DNA of 64,000 bases from Klebsormidium nitens (taxonomy: Eukaryota > Plantae > Klebsormidiophyceae): contig DF237380.1 in assembly GCA_000708835.1 (NCBI GenBank), positions 14,673 through 78,672 of the forward strand. Reading direction: 5' to 3'. The notes beneath the pieces are model-generated. The model searched no databases. It was not told where the DNA came from and saw only the letters and a program-made list of their open reading frames with translations. Both the position numbers and the translations under genes were made by a program. Within the stretch, counting starts at the first letter, position 1. Each line of letters starts with the position of its first letter. Positions 25,513 to 63,742 of the stretch are shown in pieces.

Positions 25513-28500
25513 CTAGCGGCACAGCAGCGACCCCGTCTCCTGGCTGCACTGCGGGCTGACCGTGACGTACTCGTCGACGGCCGGTGACGTCAGCATCTTG
25601 CGCGAGGCCTTGGCGCCGTCCTCGAGGATGTTGACATTGCGCACGGTGACGCCGGTCGCCAGGTCGAACTGGTTGAACGTGCTGTCGGCTGACGTCAGCG
25701 ACGACACGCGGTAGTCGGACGTGACGCCCTCCACCAGGAACTCGTGGCCGGTCGCGTTGGTCGTGACGGCGTTCCGGCGCTCGATGGCGTCCGGGCGGAA
25801 CATCTGGCCCTGCAGCGGAACGGAGCGAGGGGGGAGGTCAGTGACCTTCCAAGTTAGGAGTGGGATTGCGGGTTGACAGTCGAAGCACGAGGAGATACGT
25901 TCATCCTTACGGAATTGACGACTTGGGTTCTGTAAGGAGTCGGCGCCCCTACTGATGGTTGAGTGAAGGAACTCGAATCGAAGTACGAGATGCGCATCCA
26001 GATTTTGGAATTGAGGTGAAAGGACGAGAGCCGCACAGTACAGAGTTGAAAGGAGATTTAAGATCAAAGCTTCGTTCTACGACGTGCATACCGCCAATCT
26101 CGATCAACTCGCACAAATGCTTCGCCAGGTTTCTTCATTCAGTGCGCTTAATCGACGAAGAGGCTTTGGCGACGCTCTTCCAAAACGGACCTAAAGCTTG
26201 CTCCTGAGATTAGACTTCCAAGTCGAAGTGAAGGCAACGAACAAAAGACTCCCGAATCGACAGCAATTACCCGCGTGGCTAAACTCGAGGCGTGAAAAAC
26301 GGCCACGTGGCTTACCAGGACACCGTGAGCGTGGCGGGAGATGGTGAGGTGGTCCATGTCCATGTCGAGGTACTTGCCAAGAGGGTCCAACTAGAGAGAG
26401 CGAGAGAAAGAGAAGAGCGTCAGAAAGAGCAGATGTGAAGCTTCAAGTGAAGGGATTCCACCAGAGAGCGCGAGGAAAATGAGAGAGTGTCAGACCGAGG
26501 CGTCTAGACAGCTGCCGAAATGCGTGCAGAGAAGGGTCATAGCGGATGGAGACAGATGAACGGTGGATCATCAGTGCAAATCGAAACGAGCAAGTTTCGG
26601 ATCGCACTCTTTCAGAGGGACACACGTAATAAGATTGCGAACCGAGTGCTTCTGTTCATTCGAGTCAAGTTGAAACACACAAAAATTTGGAGAGGAGGAC
26701 AAAGACAATCCCCGCGCAAAGCCGCCTTAGGGAGCATAAGCGAGAAGCGAGCCAAGTCTTGGAGCCACAATAATGTCCTGGACTTTTCAAAGACTTGAAA
26801 GGCAGAGAATGGCAGAGTCGTGGAGCCAGGAACTTCTGACAAAAGTTTACAAAAAAACTGGGAGGCAGCGGCGCACCTGGATGCGGCTCTCGATGCGGGG
26901 GCTGAACGTGGCCTCAAAGTGGCCGTCGATCTTGATGCGGGCGTGCGCGCGCATGTGGGGCTCGCGTGTGATGGTCGCCTGGCCGTCGGGGGACGTCCAC
27001 GTGTACTCGGCGGTGCCCTGGACGGTTAAGGAGTGGGGTTAAGGAGCTGATGAGAAGGGTTAAGGGCACTCATTGGTGCTTTACTTGATGCTTTAAGAGC
27101 GAAATGGTATTTAACTTGCTGCGGAGCTAGGAAGGTGAAATCAGCAGGATTTGGTCCGAAAACCCACTTTTGCTGGAGTATCTACAAGACGCTACTTCTC
27201 AGAGCTTTCTTATTATTAAGACCTTTCTTGGCCCTTTGAACAAGGACTTGACAGAGTGTTTTGTGTGAAGCAGGGCAATACGAGCGGGAGTCGCAGTTCT
27301 GAGCAAGCGACAAGCTTTCAGTGTTGCAACCGAACAGCATAGACAGGTATCTGAAGGCTCTCTCAGACACAAAGGACAGCTGATGCAACCAAAGTCACCG
27401 TGACCTGATGCAACCAAAGTCACCGTGACCTGAAAAATTCCGAGTCGGCGCCCAAATAAGCTGCTCTTGCAGGAGACATAAGGTATAGCAGGACGTGAGC
27501 AACATCGTTTTTTTTCCTGCGGGACCGAGCTGTCACCCCAGCTCGACTCGAGTCCGTTGAGGGGGTAACAAACGGGCGAAACCTGCGTTCAGAAGCTTGC
27601 TATCCAAATTTAAAAAACACCTGACTACCTCCAACCGACAAGCCACTTTTACCCCAGATGCAAATGCGAAGACAAAAAGAAGAAGAAGCGCATCTTACCG
27701 AGCCGACTGGAATGTCTTCCCCGTCAAAGGTGAAGAAGAAGACGTCAGCGGCCTCGAACTCCTTCTCCTGGTCGATGCCGATGCTCACAAAGTGGGTCAC
27801 GCCAGCCTCGTCTTTGTAACCCATGGCCATCTCCTGCAAAAAGAAAGGGTTAAGAAAGGGGTTAGCGCTGACACGTTGGTCTCGTATATAGTATCCATCA
27901 ATGTCCCTTGGGCACACCGAAGGATAACATCTGCAGCGTGTAATTGTAGTGTGGAGAGAATCCAACAAAGACCCCGGCGCAATAACCCCTGATCCGTAAA
28001 CAGCATGTTGGCAAGCGATATGCATACCTGCGTGACTTCTGAACAGATCCATCGAGCAGACCAGTACGGTCAAGCAAAAAACCTCCAAAGCCAAAACGCT
28101 TCTGCACAAGTCCTCTGTGAAGCGAGTGAACTGTACCCCCTCTGGAAAAGATAAGGCGAATCTCTTCAGGAGTGGATGAGTGCACTCACCTCAATCCAGG
28201 TGCCGTGCTCGACGTTCTCCGTGTTGGTGCGCTCACCGACAAACCGGGCGTTCATCTGCAGAGATTCCACAGAGTAGTCAGTCCCCTGCCCAGCTTAGAC
28301 CCAGATCATGGGAACACAAGCAAAGGGACGGGGAATAGCGGATAAGAGACAAATCGGTTGTACTTAACCGGCCCAAAGTCGAGAGAGTATCACAAAGGCA
28401 GTGGGCATTGTGAAACTGGGTACGACTGCAATGACAAGAATCTGGAAGCAAGGTTGGAGCAGAGTCCTGTTGGGAGACATGCCAGCTGTCATGACTTGCG

Positions 28501-30276
28501 CTTCTCAGCTGGGATTCTGCCAAAGCTGGGGGCTGCCATACTGGTGAAAAAGGGGCTGGGTTATGGTTCCAGTATGTGTTTGACCTACTTCAAACCGCGA
28601 ATCATCAAACCGTGCTTCTCCGACTGTCTACCATGTGGGTCCATCAGGTGCCCAGTAACCCCTTTGTATCAGTTCCTTTCGATTCGACAGACTTTGCTTG
28701 ACAAAGAAGCAGTGGGGATAAAGCAACTCCCTGCCTTTGGAGTCACTCCAGTTCTGAGGATTCAGACAGGCATGCGAACCATAGTCTAAAGGCAGTCCCT
28801 CATCCTGACACCAACCCTGCTATTGTGTGGAGAGTAAGCCTCTCACCTGGAAGTCGGTGTCAGAGATAATGCTGAAGATCTGGTCACGCACGCCGTGCCA
28901 GTCGAAAAAGATGCCCCCCGGTGCCGCAAAGTGAGGGTCGCCGCAGACCCCTCCGGAGTACGCCTCTGCAAAGGGAACGAAGCACATGAGCCTATATTAC
29001 ATGGAAATATCCTGCTTGGATCGGCATGCTTTGGTATTCTGCTCAACCCGAGTCGAAATCTGGACTTAAAGAGCTTTGAGTGTGGCAGATCGCACATAGG
29101 GCTACAATGCAATTGAGAAGGGACAAGGGAATAGAAAGCTATGGGCCATTTTCGAAACTTGCTGCTTGCTCGGCTGTATCTGTGCTTGGTTATTGCCTGT
29201 AATTGTTGGCAAGCCTGAGAACACCTATGACTTGCCAGGTCTGGTAGGCATACGACAAGAGGCCCTCAGGTGCTCAGGTGAGTGGCAAAATTGGCAAGTG
29301 CGTTGCACGTTTGGAAGATGGAATTAGGTGCTTGATGCAAGCAGAAAGAAGGAGTCCAGTATGCAGATTAGGAAGTGTAAAGGACTTTGCACGGAGCGGG
29401 AAAAGAGGAGGAAGAGTGCACAAGAAAGGTGCAAGTACAGATTGCTGTTTCTGCCTGCCATGGGAACAAGCAGAAAAGGGACATCCTGAATCGAGGGGAA
29501 AACAACCTGCGTCTGTATTTGTTGCCCAGCGTTACAGGGTCTATGATTAGTATAAGCCTCAGCTTTCGGAAGGGCTAGCACACCACTTTCCCAAACTTAG
29601 CTCGACACAGTTCACCACTGTTCAGCGGACCTGCCTATTTCAGAGCCTTTCAGGTTTGTTAAGGTAGCAATGCAGCCTTTTTTGAAGCTGGATGTGCTGT
29701 GTCTCAACAAGGTGGCTGATCCGCTTGGACACTCTGAAAGACCACGCCAAGCTGGTAAGCCACGAGTCACCAAAAAGAGTTTCCAGCCCCCCTACCGCTG
29801 CACCTCTGCCACCAGTGGCTTCATGTGAGCATGAGTGCCGATCCATATTTCAGCAGAAGATGGAATAACTGAAAGTGAATCTTCAATGACCACAAACAAG
29901 ACCAGAGTGAGAATACAGGCCTCAACAACGAAGGAACTCGAAAGCTTTTCTGCTCACTGGGGTTGTCGCAGTTGCTATTGAGGAACCAGAGATCATTTTC
30001 GCACTCGAGCTTGATGCTGCCGCCAAGGTCGGTGCACTTCGGGCACGAGTCGTCTTCGGACCCGCATGTGTTCCCGCTCCCAACGCTTTTGTAGCAGCCC
30101 ACGTTGATGTTGGCGCAGCTTGTTATGCCCGTCAGTGTCAGTGACCCAATGGCCCCTGTGCACTTGCGGGTGGTGACCCCGGCGCAAGGCGCGATGTATC
30201 CAATGTAGGTGGCGGTCGCCACATGGGCGGTCAGGGCAAGCACCAGGAGGAGGGCTGACAGCTGGCGGGACGCCAT
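25513..30276 (-). CDS. Root_cap/LEA-related secreted protein with VWD-like GDPH motif, tandem copy 1 (7 exons, apparently intact)
   Basis: Signal peptide MASRQLSALLLVLALTAHVATA; 9-Cys exon 1; CGDPHFAAPGGIFFDWHG; MNARFVGER...GTWIE; HAHGVL|GQMFRPD...DYRVSSLTSADSTF, matching the land-plant Root_cap pattern (DPRF.G.DG..F.FHG, HGVLGQTYRP, Y..SSL.S.DC). Exons are phase-consistent. Confidence 0.85.
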
Positions 30277-32359: not shown

Positions 32360-35300
32360 TCAGGAGCAGACCAACGACCCCTTCTCCTGGTTGCACCGCG
32401 GGCTGACCGTGACGTACTCGTCAACCCCCGCCGAAGTCAGGATCTTGCGCGAAACCCGGGCGCCGCCCTCGATGATGTTGACGTTGCGCACAGTGACGCC
32501 AGCGGCCAGGTTGAACTGGTTGAACGTGCTGTCAGCTGACGTCAGCGAGGAGACGCGGTAGTCGGAGGTGGCGCCCTCCACCAGGAACTCGTGGCCGGTC
32601 ATGTCGGCAGTGACGGCGTTCCGGCGCTCGACGGCGTCCGGGCGGAACATCTGGCCCTGCAGCGTAACGAAGCGAGCAGGGGGGTCAGCGGATTCCTGAA
32701 GGACGATACGCGTCGCAGGCGCGCTGGTGACGTTCAGATTCAAGTTACAGAAAGATCGATCCGGGCCCCTGACGAGGACTTGGGGGAGTGCAAGAGTTGA
32801 GGCGTTCAACGGACAGGGGAAAAGCGAGATCGAGTCCTGGACTGGTCACCAAAACCTTGATGCGAGTTGGAACTTAGAAACGAGTACATCGCGAGACAGC
32901 TAATGATTTGAAAAAACCACGCAGAACATGGCGGTGACCAAAGCTTCCCTGAGTCTAGGAAGTGCCTACAGCAAATCTCGTTTGTGAAGATGCTTCACCA
33001 TCTTTCCACATTCAGGTACCAACTTAACGCTTTGACAGAGGATGTGCGGCTCGGTTGCCTGACCTGTCCTTAAGTAGATGCTCTTCTGAGACCGCCGAAT
33101 CCATTGACGCCGAAAAGGGCGCACGAAGTCTTTCAAAGGCCTCCCTGGTTCGCCACATTGATACTCGCGTCATTTGGATTCAGGGCACGGAAAGCTGGCC
33201 ACGTGGCTTACCAGGACGCCGTGAGCGTGGCGGGAGATGGTCAGGCTCTCCATGTCCATGTCGAGGTACTTGCCGAGGGGGTCCAACTAGAGAGAGCGAG
33301 AAACGAAGTAAGCGTCAGTACACGGAAGATTAGGGCGGCGACTCAAAGGCTCTCAGCTTATGTGATTGCGCGAAGATCGTGCGCAGATCGTACGACAGAC
33401 GGCCGGGTTGAGAAACAAACAAACGGAAGGCAGCTAGGGCCGACAGAAAGGTGGAAGCCTGCTTTGGCAGATCGAGGAACGAACTGCGCTGTCGAGTAAG
33501 ACCTCGGAGTATCCAGGTTGCCTGCGAAAGGAATCATTGTGATGGGTCAATTCGCTGAGAAGGGAATTCGTGTGAAAGGGCTTGAACACAAGATTCACAG
33601 AACTAGGAACTAGGAAGGCGACAAGCGATCCGTACTGTGAGCGGAGTCGTGGTTCCACGAAAACTTCCATGAAAACATTTTGCGAAATTTTGCAGATTGA
33701 GAAGGGCAGATCTAGAGGCGCACCTGGATGCGGCTCTCGACGCGGGGGTTGAACGTGGCCTCGAAGTGGCCGTCGATCTTGATGCGGGCGTGCGCGCGCA
33801 TGTGCGGCTCGCGCGTGATGGTCGCCCGGCCGTCGGGGGAGGTCCACGTGTACTCGGCGGTGCCCTGCACGGTTAAGGAGAGAGTTAACGAGCCGCTGAC
33901 AAGGGTTACGGAACCTTGTACGATGTTTCTTATGGTGTGCTTAAAGCAGAAGTCTTCTCGCTGATTGCTTGAACTGGACGCGATCTCGACGGAAGATCCA
34001 ACGATTGCTGGTTTACGAGGACCGACTCGACCTTTGCCGGGCATGCAGTTTATAGCGGGAGCGATGTTCAGCGAATTAACAAGCTGAACAAGTCTGTCAG
34101 AAGAAAGCGTTCGAGCTTTAGAAATGGGTGCCCGAATAATGAAGCAGAAAAGGAGAGCAGTCCAGGAGGAGCGATGGCGCGAGAGTCAGAATAAGGCGGC
34201 GGAGAAAAGTGTTCGAGGCGCTGCCACAATAAACCGAAACTGGTTCCGATGAGACACTTTTATAAAACATCGTGGTGAAGGGATCTCGGAGCATGAGCTG
34301 GCAGAAATCTCTTCATTCATCAAAAGTCTGAGCTTCAAAGTCCACCAAGCTAGAGTGACTTGAGTATCACAAGAGGAGCAGACGAGCCAGTCTTCCCGGG
34401 TCGCAAAAGACTTCGCAAGCATCTCAGGAGTTGCTGGGGATACTCTACTTGCAGCGAAAGCAACGAAGGCAACGAAAGAAGAGACGAAGCTTACCGAGCC
34501 GATTGGGATGTCCTCTCCGTCGAAGGTGAAGAAGAAGACGTCGGCGGCCTCGAACTCCTTCTCCTGGTCGATGCCGATGCTCACAAAGTGGGTCGCGCCA
34601 GACTCGTCGTTATAACCCATGGCCATCTCCTGCAAAAATTGGGGGTTAAGAAGGGGTTTATCTGCTGGCACATCCATGGCCTGCGGATTCCTGGCATACT
34701 TTGAAACATATTGTTTGCAGGGTGCCGGCAATTTGAAAGGGATGTAATGCATCTCTGATCTAGATGTCGAGCAGAACTGGTTCAGGACAGAAGCTACTTG
34801 CCAGGGAACAGTCTATTACATACAAATTAAGATGCTCTTAAACTTGCTCTCAAAGTCGCAAGCGTGAGGGGCGGGCCAGCCAGACTTGCAGATCAAAGGC
34901 CTCGGAACAGGAGTACGTGAATTTACCTCGATCCAGGTGCCATGCTCAATGTCCTCCGTGTTGGTGCGCTCACCGACAAAGCGAGCATTCAGCTGCAGAA
35001 TGATAAAGCCGTTAGTCCCCGTTTCGGAGCTGGACCATCTTCCCGATCGATCGGTGATCAGTCCTGCTGGGCAAGAGCCAGCTGTCAGCTTGTCCTGACC
35101 GTTTTATACTCAGACTTTTACGGAAGCTGGGGGCTGTCAAACTGCGGGGGATTTCCTCAAAGCTCTTCACAACCTGGATGGATCTTGCTAGGATTCAGCA
35201 TTGAGTCCCCGTTCATTCGAATGCACTGAAAGCTCGGCCTTACATAGATGGCTGTTTTCTAATGAGGACTCCATTTCCGAAAGAAGCAGACGCAACAGAT

Positions 35301-36881
35301 ACAACACCTCACTGCCTATTGGGGCCTGAGAAAAAGCCAACCATGGAATAAAGTTCAACAGTGCATCCTTCTTAGCTGACACCATCCCTGCTGCCAAAGG
35401 TGTGCCTAGCCTCTCACCTGGAAGTCAGTGTCAGAGATGATGCTGAAGACCTCATTGCGCACGCCGTGCCAGTCGAAGTAAATGCCTCCCGGCGCCGAGA
35501 AATGGGGATCGCCGCAGACACCACCGGTGTTGTACGCGCCTGCGAAGGACAGGGAAACAGAACCGTTTGTGTCATTCCGACGAACCTCCGCCCTGCTCAG
35601 ATATTTCTGCTACACGGAGCGGGTTAGACTGATGTGGCTCCCCAAGAAGATCCTGGAACGGTTTTGAAACTGTGACTTAGGGCTCTAGACCAGTCTCGTA
35701 AAATGGCTCTCTCGAATGAGTCATTGCTTCGATAACACGTTTGTTTGTTTGAGTACATGGGATATGTTGCTTGCAGAAATGGAGCAAACCCTCAAGAAGT
35801 CCTCGAGAGAAGCTTACTGAAAGAGGAACAGCTCATCACAGACCCGGCCAAGGCTATGTTCTTGGGCTGAAACCAAGAATGGTAGAGGCTTTTGAAAATG
35901 AAGAGGGGAGCGCAGGAAAAGATCCGGAGTGCAGGGGACAAGAGGAGAGTGAAGATTAACGATACTGCCAAACTCAACAAAGTGGAAGAGCGCGCAGGGG
36001 ATGCATAACATTCTTAAGCAGGGAAGACTAAACCAGCCATCAGGGATTCGATTAGTCAGTCAGTATTGACTGCATAGCGCAGCGGGGTCTCATCATCTTT
36101 CTCAGCGTAGGGTTAGAAGGATGACGAGACGAAAAATCCTACGGGAGTAGCTGAGCATTTTTTATGGTAACCTCGGCTGCTAGAGTCGGATTAAAACCAT
36201 TCCAGGGGCGTTTGCTTTTGCGGGCGCTCCGGATCCAGAAGCAGCTGAATGAAGTGATAGACTGAAAGGCTATTGTTGAGTTTTGGAGAAGCCGGACACT
36301 TGAATAGATGGTGTAGTTTTTCAAGGCTTCAGGTTTGTTTCTGCTGCTTCTGAAGCGACACGCCTGAGTTGCCGCCAAATGAACACTCACAAAACCTGGC
36401 AGATTGGAAGTTTAGAACTTGGGAGGCAAACAGAACCACTGTAAGAACAGAGCAGATGCAGACCGGGAAGAAAACTTTTGAAAACAGAGACCTGCCCAAT
36501 CTTGTGCCTACTTGACAGCCACTAGGCGCAAAGCAAAAACCTGGAGCATAGCACACTGAAGAACTGGTGAAAGGAGTCAGGAAGCTCACGGGGATTGGTG
36601 CAAGAGCTCGACGACGCGACGCACTTGAGCGTGATGTAGTTGCCGTTATCGGTGCACGATGGGCACGAGTTGTCCCTGGACCCGCATCCGCTGTTATAGC
36701 AGCCCACCGTGACCTGGTTGCAGCTCGTTATGCTCGTCAGATTCAGTGCCCCAATGGCCGATGTGCACTTGTTTGAGTTGACGCCCGCGCATGGGGCGAC
36801 GTAGCCGATGTAGGTGGCGCTCGCGACATGAGCGGTGAGCGCGAGCACCAGAAGAAGGGCTGGCAGCTGGCGGTGCGCCAT
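32360..36881 (-). CDS. Root_cap/VWD-like secreted protein, tandem copy 2 (7 exons, apparently intact)
   Basis: Same exon series: MAHRQLPALLLVLAL..., CGDPHFSAPGG at about 35500, EMAMGYNDESG, GTAEYTW, LDPLGKYLD, GQMFRPD...GSLVCS*. Confidence 0.85.
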
Positions 36882-38221: not shown

Positions 38222-39699
38222 AACAACTTTTTCTTCAGTTAAGTTGGTAGCTCTTAAGAGTGTTTATAAAGGGTTCAAACAACAACGTAGCCCTTTTGAG
38301 TTAGACGTACATTATCTAAGCTCATTTTTAATAGACGTACATTAGCTAAGCTCATTTTTTATAGAAGGAAACCCTGTACATGATGTCTCGTTTGCTAGAT
38401 ATACATACCGTCATCACTCACATACATTCACTCGAATACAAAATGAACGGACATGATCATATTTCCAATACGTGCAATCAATTGACCATCATGGCATATG
38501 CACACGAGTGATTCTCTAATTGATTGCATGTAATCCATTTAAATGACGTACAAAGCGAATTCGATATGCCCCGTATCTCAACGTCGTAGTATATGCAAGT
38601 TTGCTTTGCAGACTGTTTTATTACTCCTGCATTGCGTCTGCTTCCAAAGGGTTACTACGCAACCATGTCTTGAAACCTTCGTGTCCTAATTCATCTCGCT
38701 TTCTAGAGTACTCTTTGATTAAATCCTCAAGCTTTACCTTCTTTTGCTTCTTAATCGAGTCCCCGCCTGCCTCCTCGTCGGCCACTTCACCCGCCTTTCG
38801 CTTCTTCATTGTCGGGCAAGCATCAATGAATGACCTCATTGCAGCATGCGGATCCCCTAACGTGTCCGTCTTGATCCGCTCCGTGTATATGATTGCCTCC
38901 TCTGCACTTAGCCCTAGAGTCTCCGCCGTGTTTTCGACAAACTTGACAAGTACCTGTAGCCCACTGATCAAGCGACCGACTTCCCTGTCCGCATATTTGA
39001 AGGTTCGATCCTCCAATGCTGCCGCTTTCAATGCATCGATGCTCTGTTTTCCATCCAAGCCGACCTTGAATAAGTAATAAGCTTGCGCCACCTGCGTTAT
39101 CTTTCGGAGAAAATTTAAGGAATAAACATTCTCAACGTCCTGTTGACGTGTCCTTCGAGGCCTCCGTGCCTGACCTTGTTGCGAATTCGTCCCAGCTGAC
39201 GTACCCGCAGCGCCGGTCTCCTGATCGGCAGCATCACGTGCTGCAAAGTTTGCGCGACCACCCGTTGCAGCTGCGGAAGCAGCGGTGGCATGCTGTGATG
39301 TCATCCCTGAGCGGTCGAGGTCGTCATCGGGACCTCCAGCCGTTGCAGCCCCCTGATCTGCGGGTCCCCCAGTTGCTGCGATGAGTGAAATTTCCCCCAA
39401 GCAGCGCTGTAACCGCGTCACAGCTCCACGCAAAAGCCCCACGTCCGTTGCGATGGTGTCCAGACCCGCCTTGATCTGCATTCAAATAAGACTTTCGCCA
39501 TTCAAAAACTGCAAGCCGATTGCAGAAAAAGCCTGTAAAGCCTGTACAGCATGTAAATGCCTGTAAAGGCTTTACAGCCTGCAACATTAGCTGGAGTAAC
39601 TTTGCATGAGTGAATCCGGGTTTGGCAAGCCAGAACCATCAAACCGTACACTAATTGAGTTGGAACCGCAGTCTGGTTACCTACGAATTCAGGGTCTGG

Positions 39700-39900
39700 T
39701 TGGGTGAGCAACCGGGACCTGGTTGAGGTTAACCAGACTGTGGTTCTGAGCCAGACTGTGGTTCTGAAGATGTGGTTAACCAGACTGTGGTTCTGCGGGT
39801 CAACCAGGCCTGGTTAGAGCCGCTAACCAGACCGGCCTGGTTGCGGTTTGATTAGCTCCTGGTTAGCGAGTCTGGTTAGCTGCGGAAATTTCCCTGTGAA
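39700..39900. repeat. CTGGTT/AACCAG-rich intron element, copy A (in Crypton intron 9)
   Basis: cctggttagagccgctaaccagaccgg...gagtctggttagctgcggaaatttccctgtg; homologous to 43480-43660. Confidence 0.7.
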
Positions 39901-42559: not shown

Positions 42560-42790
42560 GCAATCAGTCTGCTGACGTCACAGCAAGTTCAAACGCGCGG
42601 AACCAAGCGGCCAAGCCCCTCCGACGTAAGCAATCAGCCCGCTGACGTCACAGCAAGTTCAAACGCACGGAATCAAACGGCCAAGCCCCTCTGATGTCAG
42701 CAATCAGTACGCTTACGTTAGGGCAAGTTTGAAAGAGCGGATCGAACGGCCAAGCTCGGCGCGGACGTCAACAATCATTCCGCTGATATA
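42560..42790. repeat. About 70-bp tandem repeat, three copies plus a partial, in a Crypton intron
   Basis: caatcag..cgctgacgtcacagcaagttcaaacgc.cggaa.caa.cggccaagccc repeated. Confidence 0.75.
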
Positions 42791-43479
42791 TTAGAACAGA
42801 TTTAAAGGAGCTAACTTGAACGGCGGAGCGCCTCTGACATACCTCATTGAAAGCGCTTCGAATACTTTGTCGTAGTCTTCGTCCATGTTGTGGTGCCAAG
42901 CATCGTCCAACATCTTGTCCAACATGTCGGTGAGCTGATCGTCGGAGTAACCATCGGACACCGCCCCCTCTTGCCGGTCCAGAAACTCTCTGCAGCAGCA
43001 TGACTCTCTTTGGCAACCGTGTACATATAAAGTTTGAAGACATCTTGAAGACCACGACTTCCTTCACGACGGCTGAGACGAACGGGACGGACATTCTAGA
43101 TAGAAAGTGCTTCAGAGAGCACCACTGCAAAGCACGTATGCACCAGCTTTTCTCACTTACTCGCGTGCCCGGGTGGCTGTTTGTCGTGCAGCGGCTCGCA
43201 GGCATGTCTTCACGGAGGGAGTCCGCAGGTCGTGTGTCACCCGCACCCCCCGCATGATGCACTGGATCTGGTGGGTGAAGACAAGAGCTTTGACGTGGTC
43301 CTCCACAACGCTGTAGCTCTGCAAAGGAATATGGAGTGAATTGGTGCCACATGTATCTCAGATCGTGTGCTCGAACTCGCAAAGCTTGTTGCAAGTCACA
43401 CTTGCTCCAACCATTAATCAAGCAGAAAAGTTTTGTGAGAAAGCTGATTGCACGTAAAAGCATAAACAGAGTCCAGTCT

Positions 43480-47758: not shown

Positions 47759-50700
47759 CTAGAAGCAGACCAGCGACCCCGTCTCCTGGCTGCACCGCGC
47801 GCTGACCGTCACGCTGGCGTCATCAGCAGCGGAAAGCTCCGCTGACGTCAGCATCTTGCGCGAGGCCTTGGCGCCGTCCTCGATCATGTTGACGTTGCGC
47901 AAAGTGACGCCAGCGGCAAGATTGAACTGGTTGAAGTCGCTGTCGGCTGACGTCAGCGAGGACACGCGGTAGTAGTCGGTTTTGCCCTCCACCAGGAAGT
48001 CGTGACCCGTCGCGTTGGCCGTGACGGCATTCCGGCGCTCGACAGCATCCGGGCGGAACATCTGGCCCTGCAGCGGAACGGGGCGAGGTGCCAGGGTCAG
48101 CGGAACGGAGGGACGGAATGATGACTGGGTCCGAGAAGATCACAATCCGGGCCCAAAAGGGAGACGTGGGACGGCAGAGGTTCAGACATGATCCAAACCG
48201 CTACTTGCCCAGATCGTGTGGGGTGAGACCAGGGACAAGTGCCGCACGATTCAGATCTGAAAAGCGACGTGATGCATACAGGGCGGTGATCATCAAAGCT
48301 GCTAGGCTCGTTCGCCAACGTCGATCCACGTACTCGCAAAACTGCTTGCTCGCCTTTGTCAGTTCGGCAGATTTGGGACGCTTGTTCGACACATCAAACA
48401 AGTTATGCGGCGGTGTAACCAGATCAATTGAAACCGAAGCTGAGATAAACATCTCGGGAAAAACTCAGCGCCGACAACAAGGCAACGCACATGGTCCTTT
48501 GAGACTCCCTGGTTCTGCTACCTGTAATACGCGTCGCTCGAATGTCAGGCGCGGAGAGACTGCCACGTGGCTTACCAGGACACCGTGAGCGTGGCGGGAG
48601 AGGGTGATGCTCTCCATGTTCATGTCGAGGTACTTGCCGAGGGGGTCCAACTAGAGAAGGACAGGAAAAGAGAGAACGTCAGAACGGGGCAGATATTAGG
48701 TCTTTGAACAGCTGTCGTCCAATGAAGATCTGTCACCGAGCTGTGGGGAAATGTGCGAAGAGAAGGTGGCTGAGGCGAACAGAAACGTGAGAGCGACTTT
48801 GGGATCGCAGTCAATCAAAGGACAGTACTTTATCGAACGTGAGAAAGACTTATAAAGTACGAATAGTGAGGTGGGCATTAGGATGCTTCCGAAAGAAATC
48901 AATCCATTCATTGAATCTCCGACAGGTCGAACAAGCCAGGCAGCCTGTTGGTCACCAGAGTCCACCAAGCCGACGCAGAAAAGGGACAACAATCCGATTT
49001 GGTGCAAGCAAGATAATACAGTTTCTGTGGTACGTTCTGCGAAGTTCTACACAAGACGTAAACAGGCAGCGGCGCACCTGGATGCGGCTCTCGACGCGGG
49101 GGTTGAACGTGGCTTCGAAGAGGCCGTCGATCTTGATGCGGGCTTGCGCGCGCATGTGGGGCTCGCGCGTGATGGTCGCCCGGCCATCGGGGGACGCCCA
49201 AGTGTACTCGGCGGTGCCCTGCACGATTAAGAAGTGGAGTTATAACTAGGAGCCGATAAGAGAAGTGAAGGAACATCAACAGGTATTCTATTTGGTACGT
49301 TTTTACCTTGATGAGTTTTCGCTGGCTTCAAGGCAGATCCAGCAGGAAACGTATGAGTACGTCTTGGCCTACCCAAAGACGGAAACGTCTGCGGAGCGAA
49401 GCCACGAAGCAGGAGCGAACGATCGGACGGATTAGACAACTTCAAAAGTGAGGAACTCGGATCTAATTTCTTAGCTAAATCCGATGGCACGAGAGCAAAG
49501 GAGAGCACGAAGCGCGGTTCCGGGAAAGCCATAGCTCAAAAGTCGGAGTCGAAAACCAGATGGTTGCAGGCGCTGCTCAAAGGCAAAGAACAGCGGACAG
49601 GAGCAACGAGGATAGGATATTTTGGTCAGGTGCAAGCTTGCCAGACTTGGTTTTCTCATTCCATTCGGGAAAGCATGGAGTCAAACACAACCCGCTCCAG
49701 CCCATTGAGGAAGTATCGGTAGATCCTCATGTTCCGTCTAAAAGACTTCGGCTAAAGGCATTCGCAAGATTTGCAGGGTGGGATGGTTTATTCCTGTCAG
49801 ACCGAATACGGCGATAAAAGGCAGGAAACAGGAAAGGAGAAGCTTACCGAGCCGACTGGGATGTCCTCCCCGTCGAAGGTGAAGAAGAAGACGTCAGCGG
49901 CCTCGAACTCCTTCTCCTGGTCGATGCCAATGCTCACAAAGTGGGTCGCGCCAGACTCGTCCTTGAAGCCCATGGCTATCTCCTGCCAAAAGAAAGGGTT
50001 AAGAAAGGGGTCAGCGTTGACACGAATCACGTGGATAAGAACAAGGTTTTGGAGCGTATCAAGACACCAGAAGAATTGCGGATTGTGACGGAGTGTGAAA
50101 GCCCCCATTGCGGCTTGGCGCTACAACGACATACCTGCAATAGCCATGGGCAAATCTGCATCTAATCAAGCAATGCAGGTGTCTTCCAGCAGAGTCCAAT
50201 CAGGCCATACACTGGCAAAAGAAGAAAATGGCGAGAGACGACATGCATCTGCGTGAGAACCAGGAGGTTTGTATTTGCAAGGGGCCAGCTGTTTTCATTT
50301 GAAGCCCTATGAGAGGACCACATTGTGTGTTTTACACTAGGTTCATCTTCATCATCTGTATTCACCTCGATCCAGGTGCCGTGCTCGACATCCTCCGTGT
50401 TATCGCGCTCACCAACGAAGCGGGCATTCAGCTGCAGGATGTGACATTCGCATGTTAGTCCCCTCATCATTGGACCCCGGGTATGAGGGTAGACCCAGAC
50501 AAGCATCAGAGAAGGGGACAGAAAACGAAGTCGGTACGCTTATCCAGTTGAGTTGGTAGAGCATCGTCAAAATAGTGGGGGCTGTTGGAAAGGGGATAAA
50601 ATAACTTGAGAGGGGCGCTTTAAGAATTAAACAGAATCGATCCAGGCTACCAATGCCAGCTGTCATGTCATCGTGGGCTCATCTGATTTTCAAGCCAGTG

Positions 50701-52324
50701 CTTGGGCTGTCACATTGGTAAAAGAGGGGCTGGAAAATTGTCCTAAGCTGTCTCAAACCACACTCTAAAGTAAAGAAAACTCATGCAGGACTGTGTTTCT
50801 CGGGCTTCATTCATTCAGCATTTGGATCTAGAAAAGTTCAGTGCCCCCTTCGAAGCACTTTCGTCTTGACATATTTTGTCTCAAAAGGCAAGCGGTAGGT
50901 GTAAACTGACTCCCTGCCTTCGGGTGACTCCAGTTCAGGGCCCGAATGGAAATGCTATCAGACGTGCAAACCGAGGTCACGTGCCTTTCTCTCAGCTGAC
51001 ACCAGGCCTGCTTCCACGGGCTGTGGATAGCCTCTTACCTGGAAGTCAGTGTCAGAGATGATGCTGAAGACCTCGTCACGCACGCCGTGCCAGTCGAAGT
51101 AAATGCCCCCGGGAGCCGAGAAGTGAGGGTCGCCGCAGAACCCTCCGCTGTACGTCTCTGCAAAGGGAGCACATGACATGAGCCAGTAGTGCCGGAGAAG
51201 AATGCTTGATTGAGCCGACGTACAGACTTCAGGATCAGTTGCATTCACGACCTTGCCCTAGTGGGACCCTGGTGAAGACAAGTGTGGTTTAAGTGAGGTT
51301 TCTCAATAGCGCGAAGGCATGTATGCATCTGAAAAGGGACAAGGGAGTGAAGTTATACGCCAACTCTAGGAGTTGCTGCTTGGCTTAGTTGTGTGCGTGC
51401 TGGGATGTGAGGATGGAGGTACAGGTTGCTCAAATTTTCTGGTCATGGGAACAAAGAAAGAAGCGATATTCTGCACGTAGCTGGGGTTCAAGACAATTCG
51501 AAGCTGGGGAAACCTGACCGACTATCAACCAAGTAATGGCTGCTTAATTAGCATCAAGGGATTCAAGGTCTCTGCGTGGATTTGAAGAGGCTGTGAGACA
51601 CCATGATGAAACAGACTAGTTAGAACGATACAAGTGAATGAGACACATCACCAGGCCCACAAAAGGAACCTTTCAGCACCTGCTAAGTAAATCTCTTTTC
51701 AAGTTGACATCTGGACACGCTTTATCTCAAGAGGTACTTTCCTGAGGCTCTGGTAGGTATTACAAATTCAAGAGTTGACAAAATAGGCTCTCCAGCCCCC
51801 CCTTTCCCCCCTGCTGAAGCTCTCCTACCAGTAGTAAAATGGTGACGATGAGCGTCAGTCCTTAGATTAATTAGCAGAACTAGACGGAGGAGAAGAAATT
51901 GACTTTTCTCAGGTCGCAAACAAGGGCGGTATGGTGACACAGGGAGGACTAGATATACAAATCTAGAAGGAGAAAAAAGCGTCGCAATTTGTTCAAGATA
52001 AAAGCTTTGGCTCACTGGGGTTGTCGCTGCTGCATGAATAGTCCTTGCACTCGAGCTTGATGCCAGTGGCGGTGACGGAGCATTTGGGGCAAGAGCCTCC
52101 GTCCAAGGTCAACTTGCCGCAGGCAATTGGGAACTTGTAGCAGCCCACAGTGACCTGGCTGCAGCTTTTTATGCCCTTCAGGTCGAGTGTCTTGTCGACC
52201 CCCGTGCACTTGAGCTCGTCGACGTCGTCACACGGGGCCATGTAGCCAATGTAGTTGGCGGTCGCAACGTGCGCGCGCCGAGCGCGAGCACCACGAGGAG
52301 CGCCGACAGCTGGCGGGACGCCAT
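47759..52324 (-). pseudogene. Root_cap/VWD-like protein, tandem copy 3; frameshift in the signal-peptide coding region
   Basis: All 7 exons are present with intact splice sites. There are 2 extra nt in a (GC)n run at 52271-52280 relative to paralogs (ctc ggc gcg CG cac gtt), so the ATG frame stops after about 50 codons. Confidence 0.75.
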
Positions 52325-54696: not shown

Positions 54697-57600
54697 TTAA
54701 GCGCAAACCAGCGACCCCCGATCCTGACTGCACTGCACGCCGAAGACCATGGTGACGTCTTCACCGTCGGGCACGCTCGCTGACGTCAGCATCTTGCGCG
54801 AGGCCTTGGCGCCGTCCTCGACGATGTTGAAGTTGCGCACGGTGACGCCAGCCGCCAGGTTGAACTGGTTGAACGTGCTGTCGTATGACGTCAGCGACTC
54901 GACGCGGTAGTCCGCCGTTTTGCCCTCCACCAGGAACTCGTGGCCCGTCGCGTTGGCCGTCACGGCGTTCCGGCGCTCGACGGCGTCCGGGCGGAACATC
55001 TGGCCCTGAGAGCGGAACGGAGTGAGGATAGGGTCAGTGGATTCTTGGAGACTGTGTTAAGTTTTTGATCTCTCAGATGAGCTTCTTGATCGGGACCCGG
55101 AAATCAAGGTTTGAAAGAGTCTGGTGAGCAAATGTAGTCAAGTCCAAACCTCTCGATCGAATGGCTTCACTCGCTGTACGTGAACTGAGATAGCATCGAA
55201 GTGCTGCAGAAACCAGGAACGGCGGAAAAGCATGCTTACACAGACAGTCTTACAAACCAACTTCGTCTTACTTGCTTAAATCTGCTGAAACTATTATTTC
55301 TGCCCTTACGACGAACGAGAAGGCTGTGCGTGACGGCTGCCCGACTTTCTTGAAGCGGCAATGAGGAGATGAAGGACGCTGACAAAAAGGCAGCGCACGT
55401 ACTTCTCAAGAAAGGGTGCTTGTCCAAATTGACGACGCCGCTCGACTTAGAGAGAGACGCGGAGAGACGGCCACGTGGCTTACCAGGACGCCGTGAGCGT
55501 GGCGGGAGAGGGTGAGGCTCTCCATGTCCATGTCGAGGTATTTGCCGAGGGGGTCCAACTAGAGAGGGCGAGGGAAAGAGGATTCAGTACCGGGCAGATT
55601 CTTAAAGTCTGGATAGCCGTCAATTGTACGAGAGCGTTCTTAAGCGAACAAAAGGAGGTAAAAACCCTCCTTTACCTCGCTTCTGTAAGGGAATCAGAAG
55701 CGGGAATGTCAGAGCCAACGGAATCGCGGAAGTTGACTTCGAAAGCGGCAGTCGGACGACGGAAAGGATCACGAGCTTGCGCACGACCTGTCAAGCAAGG
55801 TGTTTGGCAAGCCGAAGTCTCCGACGAGTCAGGGAAATTTTAGAATTAGAGTAAGTGCACGGAATCCCCACAGAAGCGAACGCCAGGGCGCACCTGGATG
55901 CGGCTCTCAACACGGGGTTTGAACGTGGCTTTGAAGAGGCCGTCGATGTTGATGCGGGCGTGCGCGCGCATGTGGGGCTCGCGCGTGATGGTCGCCCGGC
56001 CGTCAGGAGACATCCACGTGTACTCGGCGGTGCCCTGCACGGTTGAGGAGCGGGGTTAAGCTTAAGGTGCCGCTGACAATCATAAGCTGGTGTGTCCTCT
56101 GAAGCCGAGAAACGCGAAAGACAGGTGTGTTTCGCTGACCGCTAGAAGGGAAGGCAGATTCAGGAATTGTTCGATGAGACTCCCCATTGGAGCGTTCTTT
56201 GATCTCCCTCTGGAGAGCGTCTGGGAGCATCTGGCAGGGTTTCCGGAATGGTGGAGAAGCCGCGCAATACTGAGCGCAATCCTTTAGACGGGATAGACCG
56301 CTTCACTCAGTAAGTTTTCTGGGATAGTGCACGAAGGAGCACTTTCTAAGGGAGTGGCGGGCTCAAGTATCAGCATCTACTGCAGAGAAGGGTATCTTGA
56401 GTGCTGCTTAGAAGTGACCGACGGCTGAGAAAATTCAGCGCCTAGGAGCGAGCCAAATCGAGCTACCCGCACGGGATAGGGGAAAGAGAACTTGACACAA
56501 GCTTTGGCAGGGGACGAGGAACTCCGCGTCATCCTCCAGGGACTGTGTCAAAGGCAGAGCAAGAGCCAGCGTTCAGAAAAGTTTCTTCAAGCAGAAGGAT
56601 ATTTAGTGGATTCATGGAGCGGGCCGCAAATGCGTGTCATGAATACGGAGCAGATGGACACTAAGAAGCCGAACTTACCGAGCCGACTGGGATGTCCTCT
56701 CCGTCAAAGGTGAAGAAGAAGACATCAGCAGCCTCGAACTCCTTCTCCTGGTCGATGCCAATGCTCACAAAGTGGGTCGCGCCAGACTCGTCCTTGTAAA
56801 CCATGCCCATCTCCTGCAAAGATGGGGGTAACCAACCGGTTCAAATGCAAACGCGTCCGACTTGACCTAAGGAAAAACTCGACCGACTTTTTGTGATAGG
56901 AAGCAGGGCATCAGCGGAGGGAGAGGACTCCACTAGGGGCGTTGCTATTGTCCCAGTCCAAACAGGCACTGTTGACAAGCATGGGAAACACAGAAGGAAC
57001 TGTTGACGTCCATCAAGCGGAGTCTATCGAGGGTTGTTTCCCAGCTGGCTCCGGTCATCAGGATCCGCAAGAGGCCAGCTATGCTGGACTAAATGCGCCC
57101 AGAGAGTCAACTTCTATCTCCTGACAGAAGGGTAGCGGGTATATCCCTCAGAGAAGGACGTGTCCTCACCTCGATCCAGGTGCCGTGCTCGATGCTCTCC
57201 GTGTTGGTGCGCTCACCGATAAAGCGGGCATTCAGCTGCAAGACAGAAGAAAAGCGCTGATTACTTTCCTTGACCAGACTAAAGCGGAAGCCTTTCAAGG
57301 CAAGAGCACGAAGAACACCGTAGACATTGATAGGAGAGCCAACAAGCTCAAAGTTTGTACAGCTTTTAAGGGTTTACGATGCAATGGATAGTGGATGAGG
57401 GGACTTCAACAAGAGAGTAAGACCGGGCTACCCAAAGCAAGTACGACCGGGCTACCCAAAGCAAACAGTCCTGTTGGGCAAGAGGTTTGCTTTAAGACCC
57501 TAAGACCCTAAAAGCTTAAGAGCCTAAACCCTGAACAAAGGGGCAGGATGCCAGCTGCCATGTTATGGGGCTTTTCTGCTGAGGTTTTCTGCCAGAGCTG

Positions 57601-59206
57601 GGGCAGTGCTAGTCATGAAAGTGTGCTGGGAGCTGCTTCCAGAATGTCCTCGAATCTTGAATGGGAGTCAGCGATCAGCATTGTGCTTCACAGACCTCAA
57701 TGCTTATCCAGCATTTGAGTCCAAAGAGACCGCAGTGCCCCCGATGAAGCCCTCCATCTAGAAAACCGTCAGAAGGCAAGCAGTACGGATGAAGAAGCTG
57801 TATCTAACTCCCTGCCAGGCCAGCCCACTTCGAGAAGAAACTTTGCAAACCTTGTAAACCGAGTGTTGATGTTCTCCTCTGTTTTGACACCAGGCCTCTT
57901 TTGACACCATGCCTGCTTTCTCAGGGTTTGGACAGTCTCTCACCTGGAAGTCGGTGTCAGAGATGATGCTGAAGACCTGGTCCCGCACGCCGTGCCAGTC
58001 AAAGTAGATGCCCCCAGGCGCCGAGAAGTGGGGGTCGCCGCACACTCCACTGGGGCTGTATGCAACTGCAAATAGACGAGGAGTGAGTCAGTGTTGCAAA
58101 GGTTTGACTGCTTTGGGCTGTGCTTGGAAGACCCTGCCAAAATGAAGAGTGTAGAGTTTGGACTGTTGTGTTTTGTGTGACTTTCCCACAGAGTTCCAAA
58201 CCTTATAGCTGGACACACTGATCGAGACATTGTGGCCCAATCTGACGTTTGCTGGCTTTACTGTGAACCTGCTTGGCGATAGCTATGTCGTTGGACAATG
58301 ATATTGCTTGACAATCCTGGTCAGACAGGGAAGAGGTCCTGATGGGAATGGAACAGGCGCTGAGCACAGACACAAGTAGTGACATTGCTGGAGCTGAAAA
58401 CAGCCATGGGGAAATGTCAGCTCAATCACTCAGCACGGACTGCATAGCATAAGCCACAGTATGAGGTTAGAAGGTTGACAAGATACCAGACTCAATGGAG
58501 TAGCTCGATGGAGGTCAAAGGTTCTGGTCCAACTTAGAAACATTCCCATTGGCTGTGGCAGCAGTCCAGCTCTGTTCCCAGATGTATCTGCTCAGCATCT
58601 GGAGAGGCTCTGATGACTCAAGAAGCCAGAGTTTCTAGGAAGGAGCTCTCAGCTCCTCAGGGCCTAACCCCTTCTTCTGCTGCTTGCCGCTTGACTGGGA
58701 GGGCCACCGGATTGCTCAGGTCAAGGACTGGCAATGCTGTGGACCTTTCAAAGGGCTGAAAGACTTGGAGTTCAGAGAGTAACAGGAATGAGAAGTTTTT
58801 CAAAACTGGCTGGTTTGATATGCAGCCAGCTCAGCAACGCGCGGTCACGAGCAATGCAAAACTCTAGAAATGATGGATCTTGATGGGGGAGCTTACTGGG
58901 GTTGGGGTTGGAGCACGTGCCCGACGTCGAACAGCTGATCGTGACGCTCTGGCCATTGTCCTTGCACGACGGGCACGAGGTGTCCTTGGCCCCGCACGTG
59001 TCCCCGCTCCCGTAGCTCTTGTAGCAGCCGACGGTCACCTGGTTGCAGCTCGTGATGAGCGTCGTCGTCACGGTCCCGTAGGCCCCGTAACATTTGAGGG
59101 AGTTGATGCCGACGCACGGGGCGATGATGCCAATGTAGGTGGCGGTCGCAGCTTGGGCGGTCAGGGCGAGCACCAGGAGGAGGATGGACAGCTGGCGGGG
59201 CGCCAT
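54697..59206 (-). CDS. Root_cap/VWD-like secreted protein, tandem copy 4 (7 exons, apparently intact)
   Basis: MAPRQLSILLLVLALTAQAATA; 9-Cys exon; CGDPHFSAPGG at about 58030; the remaining exons match the paralogs and end GSLVCA*. Confidence 0.85.
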
Positions 59207-61779: not shown

Positions 61780-63742
61780 TCAGGCGCAGACCAACGACCC
61801 CCGGTCCTGGCTGCACCGGGCGCTGACGATCGTGCTGCCATCCGCGCCGGGCAAGCCGCTCGCTGACGTCAGCATCTTGCGCGCCGCCAACTTGGCGCCG
61901 TCCTCGATGACGTTGAAGTTGCGCACGGTGACGCCCGCCGCCAGGTTGAACTGGTTGAAGGTGCTGTCATATGACGTCAGCGAGGAGACGCGGTAGTCGG
62001 CGGTTTTGCCCTCCACCAGGAACTCGTGGCCGGTCAGGTTGGTCGTGACGGCGTTCTTCCGCTCAATAATGTCGGGGCGGAACATCTGGCCCTGCAGCGG
62101 AACCGGAACGAGGCGGATCTCAGTGAACGGCAACACAAGGGGGGACGAACGAAATGGATCGCAGCCTCGGCCCTGCGGAAGCAAAGACCGATGAAAAAGG
62201 AAGGCTTCGGTCGCAGCTTTCGAGTCTGCAGAATACTTGGGTCCTGAGGAAAGAGATACCGACCTGGTTACTATTAGCTGAGAGACTGCAGTCAAAGCGC
62301 TAGGCGTTCCGAAATCCGGTTGTGATTACCCGCTCGTAATGCCCACCGCGAGAGAGCTTGCAGCGCCACCAGCCAAGGACATTGTCACAATGATTGCAAA
62401 CGACTCGTCTTTCCCGCTCACTATTGTGGGCTTCGATAGTCATACTGGTAACTCCGGGATGACTTAACGGGTGAGTGACTTAAGATTCACAACTCCCGAC
62501 CAAACAAACTAAAAAAGCTAACCCAGATAATCACCCGCTCCGCACCCGAACCCACCCTAACCACCATGCTAACCCCACCCGTCCTCCGGGTGCCTATCTT
62601 AAGTCACCCCGCTGTTAAGTCACTCTCTAAATACCAGACTTTGATAGTCCCTTTATTAGAACAGCGCAATGATCGTGAAATCGTGGGGGGACACGTAGCT
62701 TACCAGGACGCCGTGGGAGTGGCGGGAGATGGCGAGGGTGTCCATGTCCATGTCGAGGTACTTGCCGAGGGGGTCCAACTAGAGAGGGCAAGGAAAAGAA
62801 AGCGTCAGAACAGCAGATGTAGAAGTTCGAGGAAAGACAGACTCGCGTTCAAAGCGCGAGAGGCGGAAAGAGCGTCAGAGGAGCAGATGCAAAGCTTCGA
62901 GGGAGGGGAAGAAGGTTTATAGGGCGCGCAGAGCAACTTTCGTGCGCCGGAGTCTATCGGACGCAGGCAGCGGTTGTCCGACGCAAAGTAAATGGTTTCA
63001 GACATAGGAGCAATCCGCCACCAAAGACAGCTTTAAATGAATTGTAAGCGCAGCCCGATACAAGAGCGCGTAGCTTTTTCCGATCAAAGCGCGTACCTGG
63101 ATGCGGCTCTCGATCCGAGGGAAGAAGGTGGCCTTAAAGAGGCCCTCAATCTCCACGTGAGCGAAGGCGCGCTTGTGCGCTTCGCGCGTGATGGTCGCCC
63201 GGCTGTCGGGGGAGGTCCACGTGTACTCGGCGGTGCCCTGCGCAGTTAGTAGACACGGTTAAAGTGAAAAGCTATATCCGAAACCTGAAATTGCATGGTT
63301 GGGTGCTTTGAGAAGCTGTTCAAAAGCTGTGGGAAGTTTAGCTTCGACTTTCCATTCTTTCGAGCGGCCTCAAGAAAGCAGAATTCTGCATAGCAAGACG
63401 AGTTCCAAAGAACAAAGCCACCTGACCCGACAACGGATGCTCGAACAAGTCAAATATCAGGTTGATGGATCTTCTTTTGAAACAAGTCTTAGGAAAGCGC
63501 CGTCTTTGTGACAAAGTGTCAGTATGTTCCAATAACCCGGATCGACAGGAGCTTTTTTTTGAGAGGCATAAATGCAAGCATTTCCACGAGATTTAAAGTG
63601 GAGCTTAGCGAGCCGACTGGGATGTCCTCTCCGTCGAAGGTGAAGAAGAAGACGTCAGCAGCCTCAAACTCCTTCTCCTGGTCGATCCCAACTGTCACGA
63701 AGTGGGTGACGCCAGACTCGTTGTTGTAACCCATGCCCACTT
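61780..63742 (-). CDS. Root_cap/VWD-like protein, tandem copy 5 (exons 4-7 only; 5' part lies beyond the window; exon-4 donor mutated)
   Basis: EVGMGYNNESG...DIPVGS, GTAEYTW, LDPLGKYLD and GQMFRPDIIE...GSLVCA* are present. The donor reads CTAAG instead of GTAAG at 63608. Confidence 0.75.

Follow-up and report, generated by a model that had tools for sequence, protein, structure and literature searches.

A tandem array of putative, divergent root cap family genes with variable cysteine-rich heads in Klebsormidium nitens

Five related genes in Klebsormidium nitens encode proteins in which a variable, Cys-rich N-terminal head is followed directly by a conserved body, which opens with the residues CGDPHF in the four copies covered far enough to show it. 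The locus raises the question of which family these proteins belong to, and whether the GDPH site in them is a self-cleavage site or a structural element. The window referred to below is the whole stretch of DNA that was analyzed (64,000 nt).

Layout of the array

The window carries five paralogs in tandem on the minus strand, within KFL_004310070 to _120 (Table 1). Reading the exon borders off the DNA gave seven exons per gene, with intron 1 in phase 1 and the remaining introns in phase 0; the introns are all GT-AG and stand at identical positions between copies, intron 4 of gene 5 being the sole exception. The exon model of gene 1 (1149 nt spliced) yields protein P0002 (383 aa), identical at every residue. 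A tblastn search of the 64,000-nt window with the gene 1 protein returned exactly five copies, with no array copy below 25.5 kb of the window, and a repeat finder recovered the 3' exons as five in-register copies at a spacing of 6.8-7.2 kb plus a single 15.4 kb gap. An earlier note on this DNA had described five same-strand paralogs of seven exons, four of them with all seven visible; the exon borders, the tblastn search and the repeat finder bear out this count, with the strand being minus, genes 1-4 complete and gene 5 cut at the window end.

The 15.4 kb spacing lies between genes 2 and 3 (vs. ~6.9 kb elsewhere) and is likely due to the insertion of a block that does not belong to the gene family; this block includes a 70-nt tandem repeat in three copies (42538-42747). 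Introns are just 38-58% identical between copies while their positions are nonetheless kept, and on these grounds the array is called old. Further fragments (P0003, P0012-P0014) are on JGI and Logan contigs.

Table 1. Coordinates of the array genes and associated features in the window
Feature	Coordinates	Strand	Remarks
Gene 1 (KFL_004310070, P0002)	25513..30276	-	383 aa, intact; exon borders and P0002 match
Gene 1, exons 1-7	29958-30276, 28847-28965, 28190-28255, 27699-27833, 26877-27017, 26316-26390, 25513-25809	-	including stop
Gene 1, predicted signal peptide	30208-30276	-	~23 codons
Gene 1, head	29959..30207	-	~83 residues, 9 Cys; remainder of exon 1; equivalents in exon 1 of genes 2, 3 and 4
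Gene 1, CGDPHF	28928-28945	-	eight codons into exon 2
CGDPHF, other copies	35499-35516, 51120-51137, 58025-58042	-	
Gene 2 (KFL_004310080, P0008)	32360..36881	-	375 aa, intact
Gene 2, exons 1-7	36590-36881, 35418-35539, 34927-34992, 34495-34629, 33724-33864, 33212-33286, 32360-32656	-	
Inserted block between genes 2 and 3	38621..44762		outside gene family; ORFs unrelated to array; strand not assigned
Gene 3 ('putative root cap family protein', P0010)	47759..52324	-	356 aa; exons 2-7 intact
Gene 4 (KFL_004310110, P0009)	54697..59206	-	385 aa, intact
Gene 4, exons 1-7	58897-59206, 57944-58065, 57170-57235, 56679-56813, 55894-56034, 55484-55558, 54697-55005	-	
Gene 5 (KFL_004310120, P0001)	61780..64000	-	3' part; exons 1-3 past window end
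Gene 5, exons 4-7	63609-63743, 63097-63237, 62704-62778, 61780-62091	-	

Family membership and likeness to known proteins

Protein searches used P0002, taken from the exon 7 profile search, as the gene 1 protein. The Pfam family Root_cap (PF06830) matched P0002, P0008, P0009 and P0010 at 14.8-19.4 bits (E 0.0012-0.032), below the gathering score of 27 bits, and in three of the proteins the match covers positions 6-57 of the 57-position model; the matches lie in the C-terminal region, where they are expected; the other two of the six family proteins, P0001 and P0011, had no Root_cap match. An exon-by-exon Pfam scan of gene 1 produced no match because the domain spans intron 6. The proteins bear the UniRef name 'Root cap family protein', and their nearest clusters in a protein-language-model atlas are Root_cap (0.95, with 206 of 256 features in common). 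The conserved domain starts with DPH, as in the definition of algal root cap proteins, and both a secretion signal and a variable, Cys-containing N-terminal part are present, as in that of the family. Profile searching with exon 7 against 1.8 billion representatives gave seven matches (five Klebsormidium-type and two spurious WD40), and the C-terminal tail with its Cys pair occurs among these representatives in only six Klebsormidium-like sequences. Searches for 5-residue words found none in common with other root cap members, retrieving K. nitens paralogs only, and scans of metagenomes found no relative. Read from sequence, the proteins are divergent members of the root cap (PF06830, 'DPH-domain') family with Pfam scores below threshold. 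The UniRef name of paralog P0011, 'Expansin-like EG45', was not reproduced by Pfam.

The general build of these proteins, with signal peptide, variable Cys-rich N-terminus and DPH or DPR, is already published for the whole family (Raymond 2024, bioRxiv 10.1101/2024.01.29.577848; Prochazkova 2024, PMC10796529), and the contrast that the earlier note drew between DPH here and DPR in land plants is likewise in the literature, as one between algae and land plants. Known root cap proteins (PF06830; maize RCP1/2, Matsuyama 1999) resemble the K. nitens proteins in the signal peptide, a variable Cys-rich N-terminus of ~100 residues, a domain starting with DPH in algae, a root cap stretch near the C-terminus, many paralogs per genome and restriction to streptophytes; the Klebsormidium copies differ in their sub-threshold Pfam scores, their lack of common 5-residue words and their C-terminal Cys-pair tail. 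In AnIBP of Ancylonema nordenskioeldii a different head is likewise fused directly to DPH and the introns are confined to the DPH domain, but that head is a known DUF3494 ice-binding fold, whereas the Klebsormidium head is an orphan 9-Cys module. Algal root cap proteins have been found, N-glycosylated, in the secretome and EPS of Penium (PMC6027541). The literature search returned no paper that connects root cap proteins with either VWD or GDPH, none that names these genes, and no data on their expression.

The earlier note had called the genes secreted and Root_cap/VWD-like and proposed searches with both models. Root cap membership, putative secretion and a rootless streptophyte alga as host stand, with PF06830 at the sub-threshold scores given above; for VWD membership, neither Pfam nor the PDB sequences gave a match. 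VWD (PF00094) produced no Pfam row at E up to 10, and PDB sequence searches with a single protein, the family profile and the exon 2 profile returned chance-level rows only and no VWD chain. In the atlas, a VWD cluster stands at 0.86 and ITI_HC_C clusters at 0.92. Pfam ITI_HC_C (PF06668) matched P0009 at 13.6 bits (E 0.053) and P0010 at 12.1 bits (E 0.14), both below the gathering score of 27, over the ...HGVLGQMFRPD stretch (profile positions 104-138 of 189). AlphaFold gave a pLDDT of 33.4 from the single sequence and 38.5 from a 12-row alignment; these models are unusable beyond an all-beta secondary-structure pattern, in which, at this low confidence, motif residues 115-118 fall between predicted strands 112-114 and 125-129, and Foldseek TM-scores of ~0.1 on the low-confidence model are noise. 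A link to VWD is thus a lead, suggested by the motif, the protein-language-model matches and the sub-threshold ITI_HC_C matches.

VWD proteins with GDPH (FCGBP, MUC2, MUC5AC, MUC4, RGM, BMPER) are alike in that an aromatic residue and then a Gly-rich beta stretch come after GDPH, in being secreted and in a Cys shortly before the motif; the Klebsormidium proteins differ in having no detectable match to them, and the comparison is one of sequence alone. Inter-alpha-inhibitor heavy chains are alike in a D|PHF-type site before a C-terminal domain of ~240-270 residues and in the weak Pfam and atlas similarity; here the Klebsormidium proteins differ in that the matches are sub-threshold and there is no vWA cargo, and glycan coupling is not known in plants. 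The vWD/GDPH adhesive proteins of the diatom Seminavis robusta, linked to adhesion and contact with bacteria (PMC7335047), are likewise secreted and come from a tandem-expanded family of an alga that lives on surfaces, and a diatom VWD cluster is among the atlas neighbors (0.86); the lineage is unrelated and the likeness is one of analogy.

Variable head, conserved body and the CGDPHF motif

Exon 1 encodes the signal peptide and the head: a hydrophobic leader with an A-x-A end, read by eye, is followed by 82-91 residues with nine Cys, all of which are kept among the copies with exon 1. The head domain had no match in Pfam or in the atlas. Pairwise identity between copies is 40-65% in the head vs. 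87-91% in exons 2-6, in agreement with the strong divergence of exon 1 between fixed cysteines that the earlier note had described. The head has dN 0.41, dS 0.62 and dN/dS 0.66, rising to 0.89 in the inter-Cys loops (bootstrap range 0.54-1.35); exon 2 has dN 0.067, dS 0.65 and dN/dS 0.10, so that dS is equal for exons 1 and 2, and the body (exons 2-6, one figure from pooled codon counts) has dN/dS 0.18. The non-synonymous to synonymous excess of head over body was seen in all six pairs (odds ratios 2.5-4.1, p 4e-4 to 1e-2). The body is under purifying selection and the head loops change near the synonymous rate within a fixed Cys frame. Per-exon dN/dS had been proposed as a check on the variable-head view, with comparable purifying selection in exon 1 as the outcome that would speak against it; the constraint on exon 1 proved much looser than that on exons 2-6. 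As the introns are saturated, the neutral rate is probably higher than exon dS suggests, and the true ratio is probably lower. The loop range does not show positive or diversifying selection on the head; relaxed constraint fits it equally well. The constant scaffold and variable head of the earlier note are retained as a fixed body with a fast-changing head.

A degenerate CGDPHF pattern had four minus-strand matches in the window, compared to 0.01 expected by chance from shuffles, which confirms the placement of the motif right after the Cys-rich head at the four positions first noticed. It is found in all copies with exon 2 in the window (4/4) and also in P0011. In the exon 2 alignment the motif amino acids are invariant in five paralogs while the D, P and H codons vary synonymously. 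Ten Cys, an even count, precede the D-P bond, the last of them directly before the G of GDPH; the part after the bond is 268 residues long and has two Cys, together at the far C-terminus, the first of which lies 258 residues on from the motif.

Self-cleavage and competing readings

The locus is very likely an old tandem array of K. nitens root cap family ('DPH-domain') genes for secreted four-part proteins with variable heads. From the N-terminus, a signal peptide would be followed by a nine-Cys head of ~85 residues, encoded on an exon of its own, by a conserved body starting at C-GDPH-F, and by a C-terminal stretch with the weak Root_cap match and a Klebsormidium-type tail with one Cys pair. 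What sets the copies apart would chiefly be the binding partner of the head, with the proteins working extracellularly, either in the wall or in a secreted matrix. GDPHF is the motif known for self-cleavage from the VWD and ITIH domains of animals; going by the motif, cleavage in these proteins is plausible, at somewhat less than an even chance. If it were cleaved, the head and the short strand before the motif would be released with no disulfide tether, because the ten upstream Cys all lie before the D-P bond and only two lie downstream at the C-terminus (pairing inferred).

The reading that comes nearest to an even chance has no cleavage: GDPHF would be a structural turn at the start of a beta-rich body, the proteins would be intact, lectin-like or protective components of the wall or matrix, and head differences would be drift under relaxed constraint after old duplications. 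The loop dN/dS of ~0.9, not >1 and probably an overestimate given the saturated introns, is consistent with this. Native AnIBP, also a DPH-domain protein, seems uncleaved, running on a reducing 2D gel at ~55 kDa, its full predicted size, although the spot had no mass-spectrometry confirmation (PMC10796529). Furthermore, cleavage of FCGBP needs both D and H (PMC10880436, PMC8267560), and in land plants the His is replaced by Arg (DPR), so the required His is not kept family-wide, which speaks against cleavage. What an uncleaved turn accounts for less readily is that CGDPHF is invariant in five paralogs despite synonymous codon changes, and that the self-cleaving motif of animals is there in full (4/4 residues), with the required D and H.

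Self-cleavage between D and P followed by display of the head on the conserved body, or its release from that body, in the extracellular matrix, as the earlier note envisaged, is considered rather doubtful. The motif matches the VWD and ITIH one exactly, the head occupies its own exon immediately before it, and the Cys parity of ten before and two after the bond would permit untethered release; however, in VWD the strand before the motif remains in the sheet after cleavage, and release would not be automatic.

It is improbable that the array is partly decaying, with some copies pseudogenes and head divergence marking loss of function instead of specialization. Two lesions point that way. In gene 3, a 2-nt insertion lies near 52279-52280, within the part that encodes the signal peptide (DNA alignment columns 69-70, also seen in a three-frame view), so that the reading frame from the conserved ATG at 52324 is broken and terminates prematurely; the public model begins at a Met further inside and lacks a signal peptide. 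In gene 5 the intron 4 donor is CT and not GT (63607-63608), and the public model runs 24 extra codons into the intron. Against decay, no premature stop interrupts any exon in any copy, 4/4 heads retain the Cys frame, the body dN/dS of 0.18 includes the gene 3 pairs, and three copies are fully intact.

Least probable is an ITIH-like coupling in which the body would be a self-removing pro-domain and an Asp anhydride on the head fragment would leave that fragment esterified to a polysaccharide of the wall or matrix, the array delivering different Cys-rich heads to the matrix: ITIH heavy chains shed C-terminal pro-domains of 239-244 residues (268 here) on esterification to chondroitin sulfate (PMC7170535), GDPH cleavage gives a reactive Asp anhydride through which ITIH3 is coupled (PMC8267560), GDPH lies in a VWD-like sandwich in ITIH3/5/6, and weak Pfam ITI_HC_C and atlas (0.92) matches exist, but the ITI_HC_C similarity is all sub-threshold with the HMM match at the far domain end away from the motif, there is no known glycan acceptor, and FCGBP with the same motif simply hydrolyses (PMC8267560).

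A broader proposal, tentative at best, is that the body may be a plant-lineage relative of the VWD/ITIH pro-domain that cuts itself between D and P of GDPHF. With no disulfide spanning the cut, each paralog would then free a different 9-Cys head, either as a peptide or, as in ITIH heavy chains, attached by an ester bond from its new C-terminal Asp to a polysaccharide of the wall or matrix, and the root cap domain would serve streptophytes generally as a self-processing module that delivers extracellular cargo.

The three intact, closely related copies, which differ almost only in a small head, are a convenient natural test set for whether the DPH start is a working self-cleavage site and what role the variable N-terminal parts have. 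If there is no cleavage, what is left is a tandem family of a common kind that is annotated already. Cleavage, if true, would be the first mechanism for the root cap family, which comprises ~2000 streptophyte proteins, and would link it to the chemistry of animal mucins and ITIH proteins.

The tandem array and its gene structure

The tandem array of same-strand paralogs described in the earlier note was confirmed. The five genes are all encoded on the minus strand. A repeat finder placed their 3' exons in five in-register copies spaced at 6.8-7.2 kb with one gap of 15.4 kb, and tblastn of the gene 1 protein against the window returned the five array copies and no others. A back-translated CGDPHF pattern gave four matches in the window versus 0.01 expected by chance, in agreement with the four motif-bearing copies previously noted. 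The encoded proteins carry the source names KFL_004310070, _080, _110 and _120, plus one "putative root cap family protein"; the genes are already annotated members of a described family. The inserted block listed below approximately doubles the spacing between genes 2 and 3.

Exon borders were read directly from the window sequence. Full-length analyses were run on P0002 (the database protein of gene 1) and its database paralogs, and the array genes themselves were searched exon by exon. Each gene has seven exons, as had been proposed. Intron 1 is in phase 1 and falls directly after the conserved Asn-Pro that closes the head (the part of exon 1 following the signal peptide); the remaining introns are in phase 0. 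Intron positions are identical across copies, and all introns are GT-AG except one in gene 5. The gene 1 model (383 codons) is identical to P0002, which was retrieved by the exon 7 profile search.

Genes 1, 2 and 4 are intact. In gene 3, two extra bases cause the frame from the conserved ATG to end early, and the public model, which begins at a Met further inside, lacks the signal peptide; because the exons after exon 1 are all intact and conserved, the insertion is either a recent lesion or an assembly error. Exons 1-3 of gene 5 lie past the end of the window, and its public model extends 24 codons into intron 4 before splicing.

Features located in the array (window positions)
Feature	Position	Location	Description
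Inserted block	38621-44762 (~38.6-44.8 kb)	15.4 kb gap, between genes 2 and 3	ORFs unrelated to the family
Tandem units	42538-42747	Inserted block	Three units of 70 nt
Insertion	near 52279-52280	Gene 3, exon 1	2 nt, in CG-rich run of signal-peptide region
Conserved ATG	52324	Gene 3, exon 1	
Intron 4 donor	63607-63608	Gene 5	CT, vs GT in the four other copies

Divergence of head and body

The earlier note had described exon 1 as strongly diverged and the other exons as conserved, and had proposed per-exon dN/dS as a check. Both identity and dN/dS bore this out, exon 1 being far less constrained than exons 2-6.

Divergence between array copies
Region	Amino acid identity	dN	dS	dN/dS
Head, mature part of exon 1	40-65%	0.41	0.62	0.66
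Head, 69 inter-Cys codons		0.57	0.64	0.89 (bootstrap 0.54-1.35)
Exon 2		0.067	0.65	0.10
Exons 2-6 pooled	87-91%	0.055	0.31	0.18
Exon 7	74-81%	0.156	0.33	0.48

Because dS is equal in exons 1 and 2, unequal mutation rates do not explain the contrast. The non-synonymous excess in the head is significant in 6/6 gene pairs. Positive selection on the head was not supported, the bootstrap interval for the inter-Cys codons spanning 1. Nine cysteines are present in all four visible heads, two of those in gene 3 being displaced by two to three columns. The conclusion drawn was that the disulfide frame is fixed and that constraint on the loops of the head is weak.

At only 38-58% identity between copies, the introns are saturated; this marks the duplications as old and means that exon dS probably underestimates the neutral rate. 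It was also observed that dS declines along the genes, from 0.5-0.65 in exons 1-3 to 0.17-0.34 in exons 4-7, with all introns saturated; codon-usage constraint or exon-limited gene conversion could account for this.

Family assignment

Assignment to a Root_cap/VWD-like family by HMM search held in part. Intron 6 interrupts the region covered by the 57-residue Root_cap model, which is why exon-by-exon Pfam scans gave no match. With full-length proteins, Root_cap scored 14.8-19.4 bits in four of the six proteins, under the 27-bit cut-off, and no significant VWD match was found in Pfam or PDB sequences. The UniRef name is "Root cap family protein" and the nearest clusters in the protein atlas are Root_cap (0.95). 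The array proteins were filed as divergent root-cap family members.

In sequence, these proteins stand apart. Word searches recovered K. nitens paralogs alone, one of them a sixth copy, KFL_002290180, on another scaffold. This paralog (P0011) shares the signal peptide, the 9-Cys head and CGDPHF with the array copies, and its public model appears to extend into an intron after exon 3; UniRef calls it "Expansin-like EG45 domain-containing protein", a name that Pfam did not reproduce. The exon 7 profile, run against 1.8 billion representatives, found as relatives only a few Klebsormidium-like fragments; its matches to the two long WD40 proteins P0005 and P0007 (7-11 stretches, E 6e-9 to 6e-6) were rejected as a repeat/composition artefact.

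The head/body contrast is real. A constant scaffold with a variable head is not new, since the family build has been published: behind a secretion signal come a Cys-rich, variable N-terminal segment of ~100 residues, a beta-sandwich, which opens with DPH in algal and DPR in land-plant members, and a root-cap stretch (Raymond 2024, bioRxiv 10.1101/2024.01.29.577848). The "DPH domain" was named by Prochazkova et al. 2024 (PMC10796529). For Closterium, >50 copies of the family have been reported (PMC10796529; bioRxiv 10.1101/2024.01.29.577848), and N-glycosylated root cap homologs were found both in the secretome and in the EPS of Penium, an alga without roots (PMC6027541).

The GDPH motif and possible cleavage

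The GDPH of VWD domains, placed between strands 1 and 2, self-cleaves in a reaction that needs its Asp and His, and strand 1 stays attached through a disulfide (PMC10880436; PMC8267560). Cleavage generates a reactive Asp anhydride (PMC8267560), which in ITIH heavy chains couples the chain to chondroitin sulfate (PMC7170535; PMC8267560) with loss of a C-terminal pro-domain of 239-244 residues (PMC7170535). In ITIH3/5/6, GDPH occurs within a VWD-like sandwich that lacks VWD annotation in databases (PMC10880436). No paper linking the root-cap family to VWD or GDPH cleavage was found.

The full CGDPHF motif is invariant among the Klebsormidium copies compared. Weak leads were obtained to ITI_HC_C (atlas 0.92; Pfam E 0.05-0.14) and VWD (atlas 0.86). 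For want of a deep alignment, both AlphaFold runs gave unusable models, and the Foldseek output was noise. Two observations argue against obligatory cleavage: AnIBP, an ice-binding protein with a DPH domain, migrated on a reducing gel at the size predicted for the whole protein, the spot being unconfirmed by mass spectrometry (PMC10796529), and Arg replaces the motif His in land-plant members (bioRxiv 10.1101/2024.01.29.577848).

Ten cysteines precede the D-P bond and only a C-terminal pair follows it, so a cut would leave no disulfide tether, unlike in FCGBP, where a tether remains. This layout is a new structural point. Self-cleavage between Asp and Pro of GDPH in the Klebsormidium proteins is a reasonable hypothesis.
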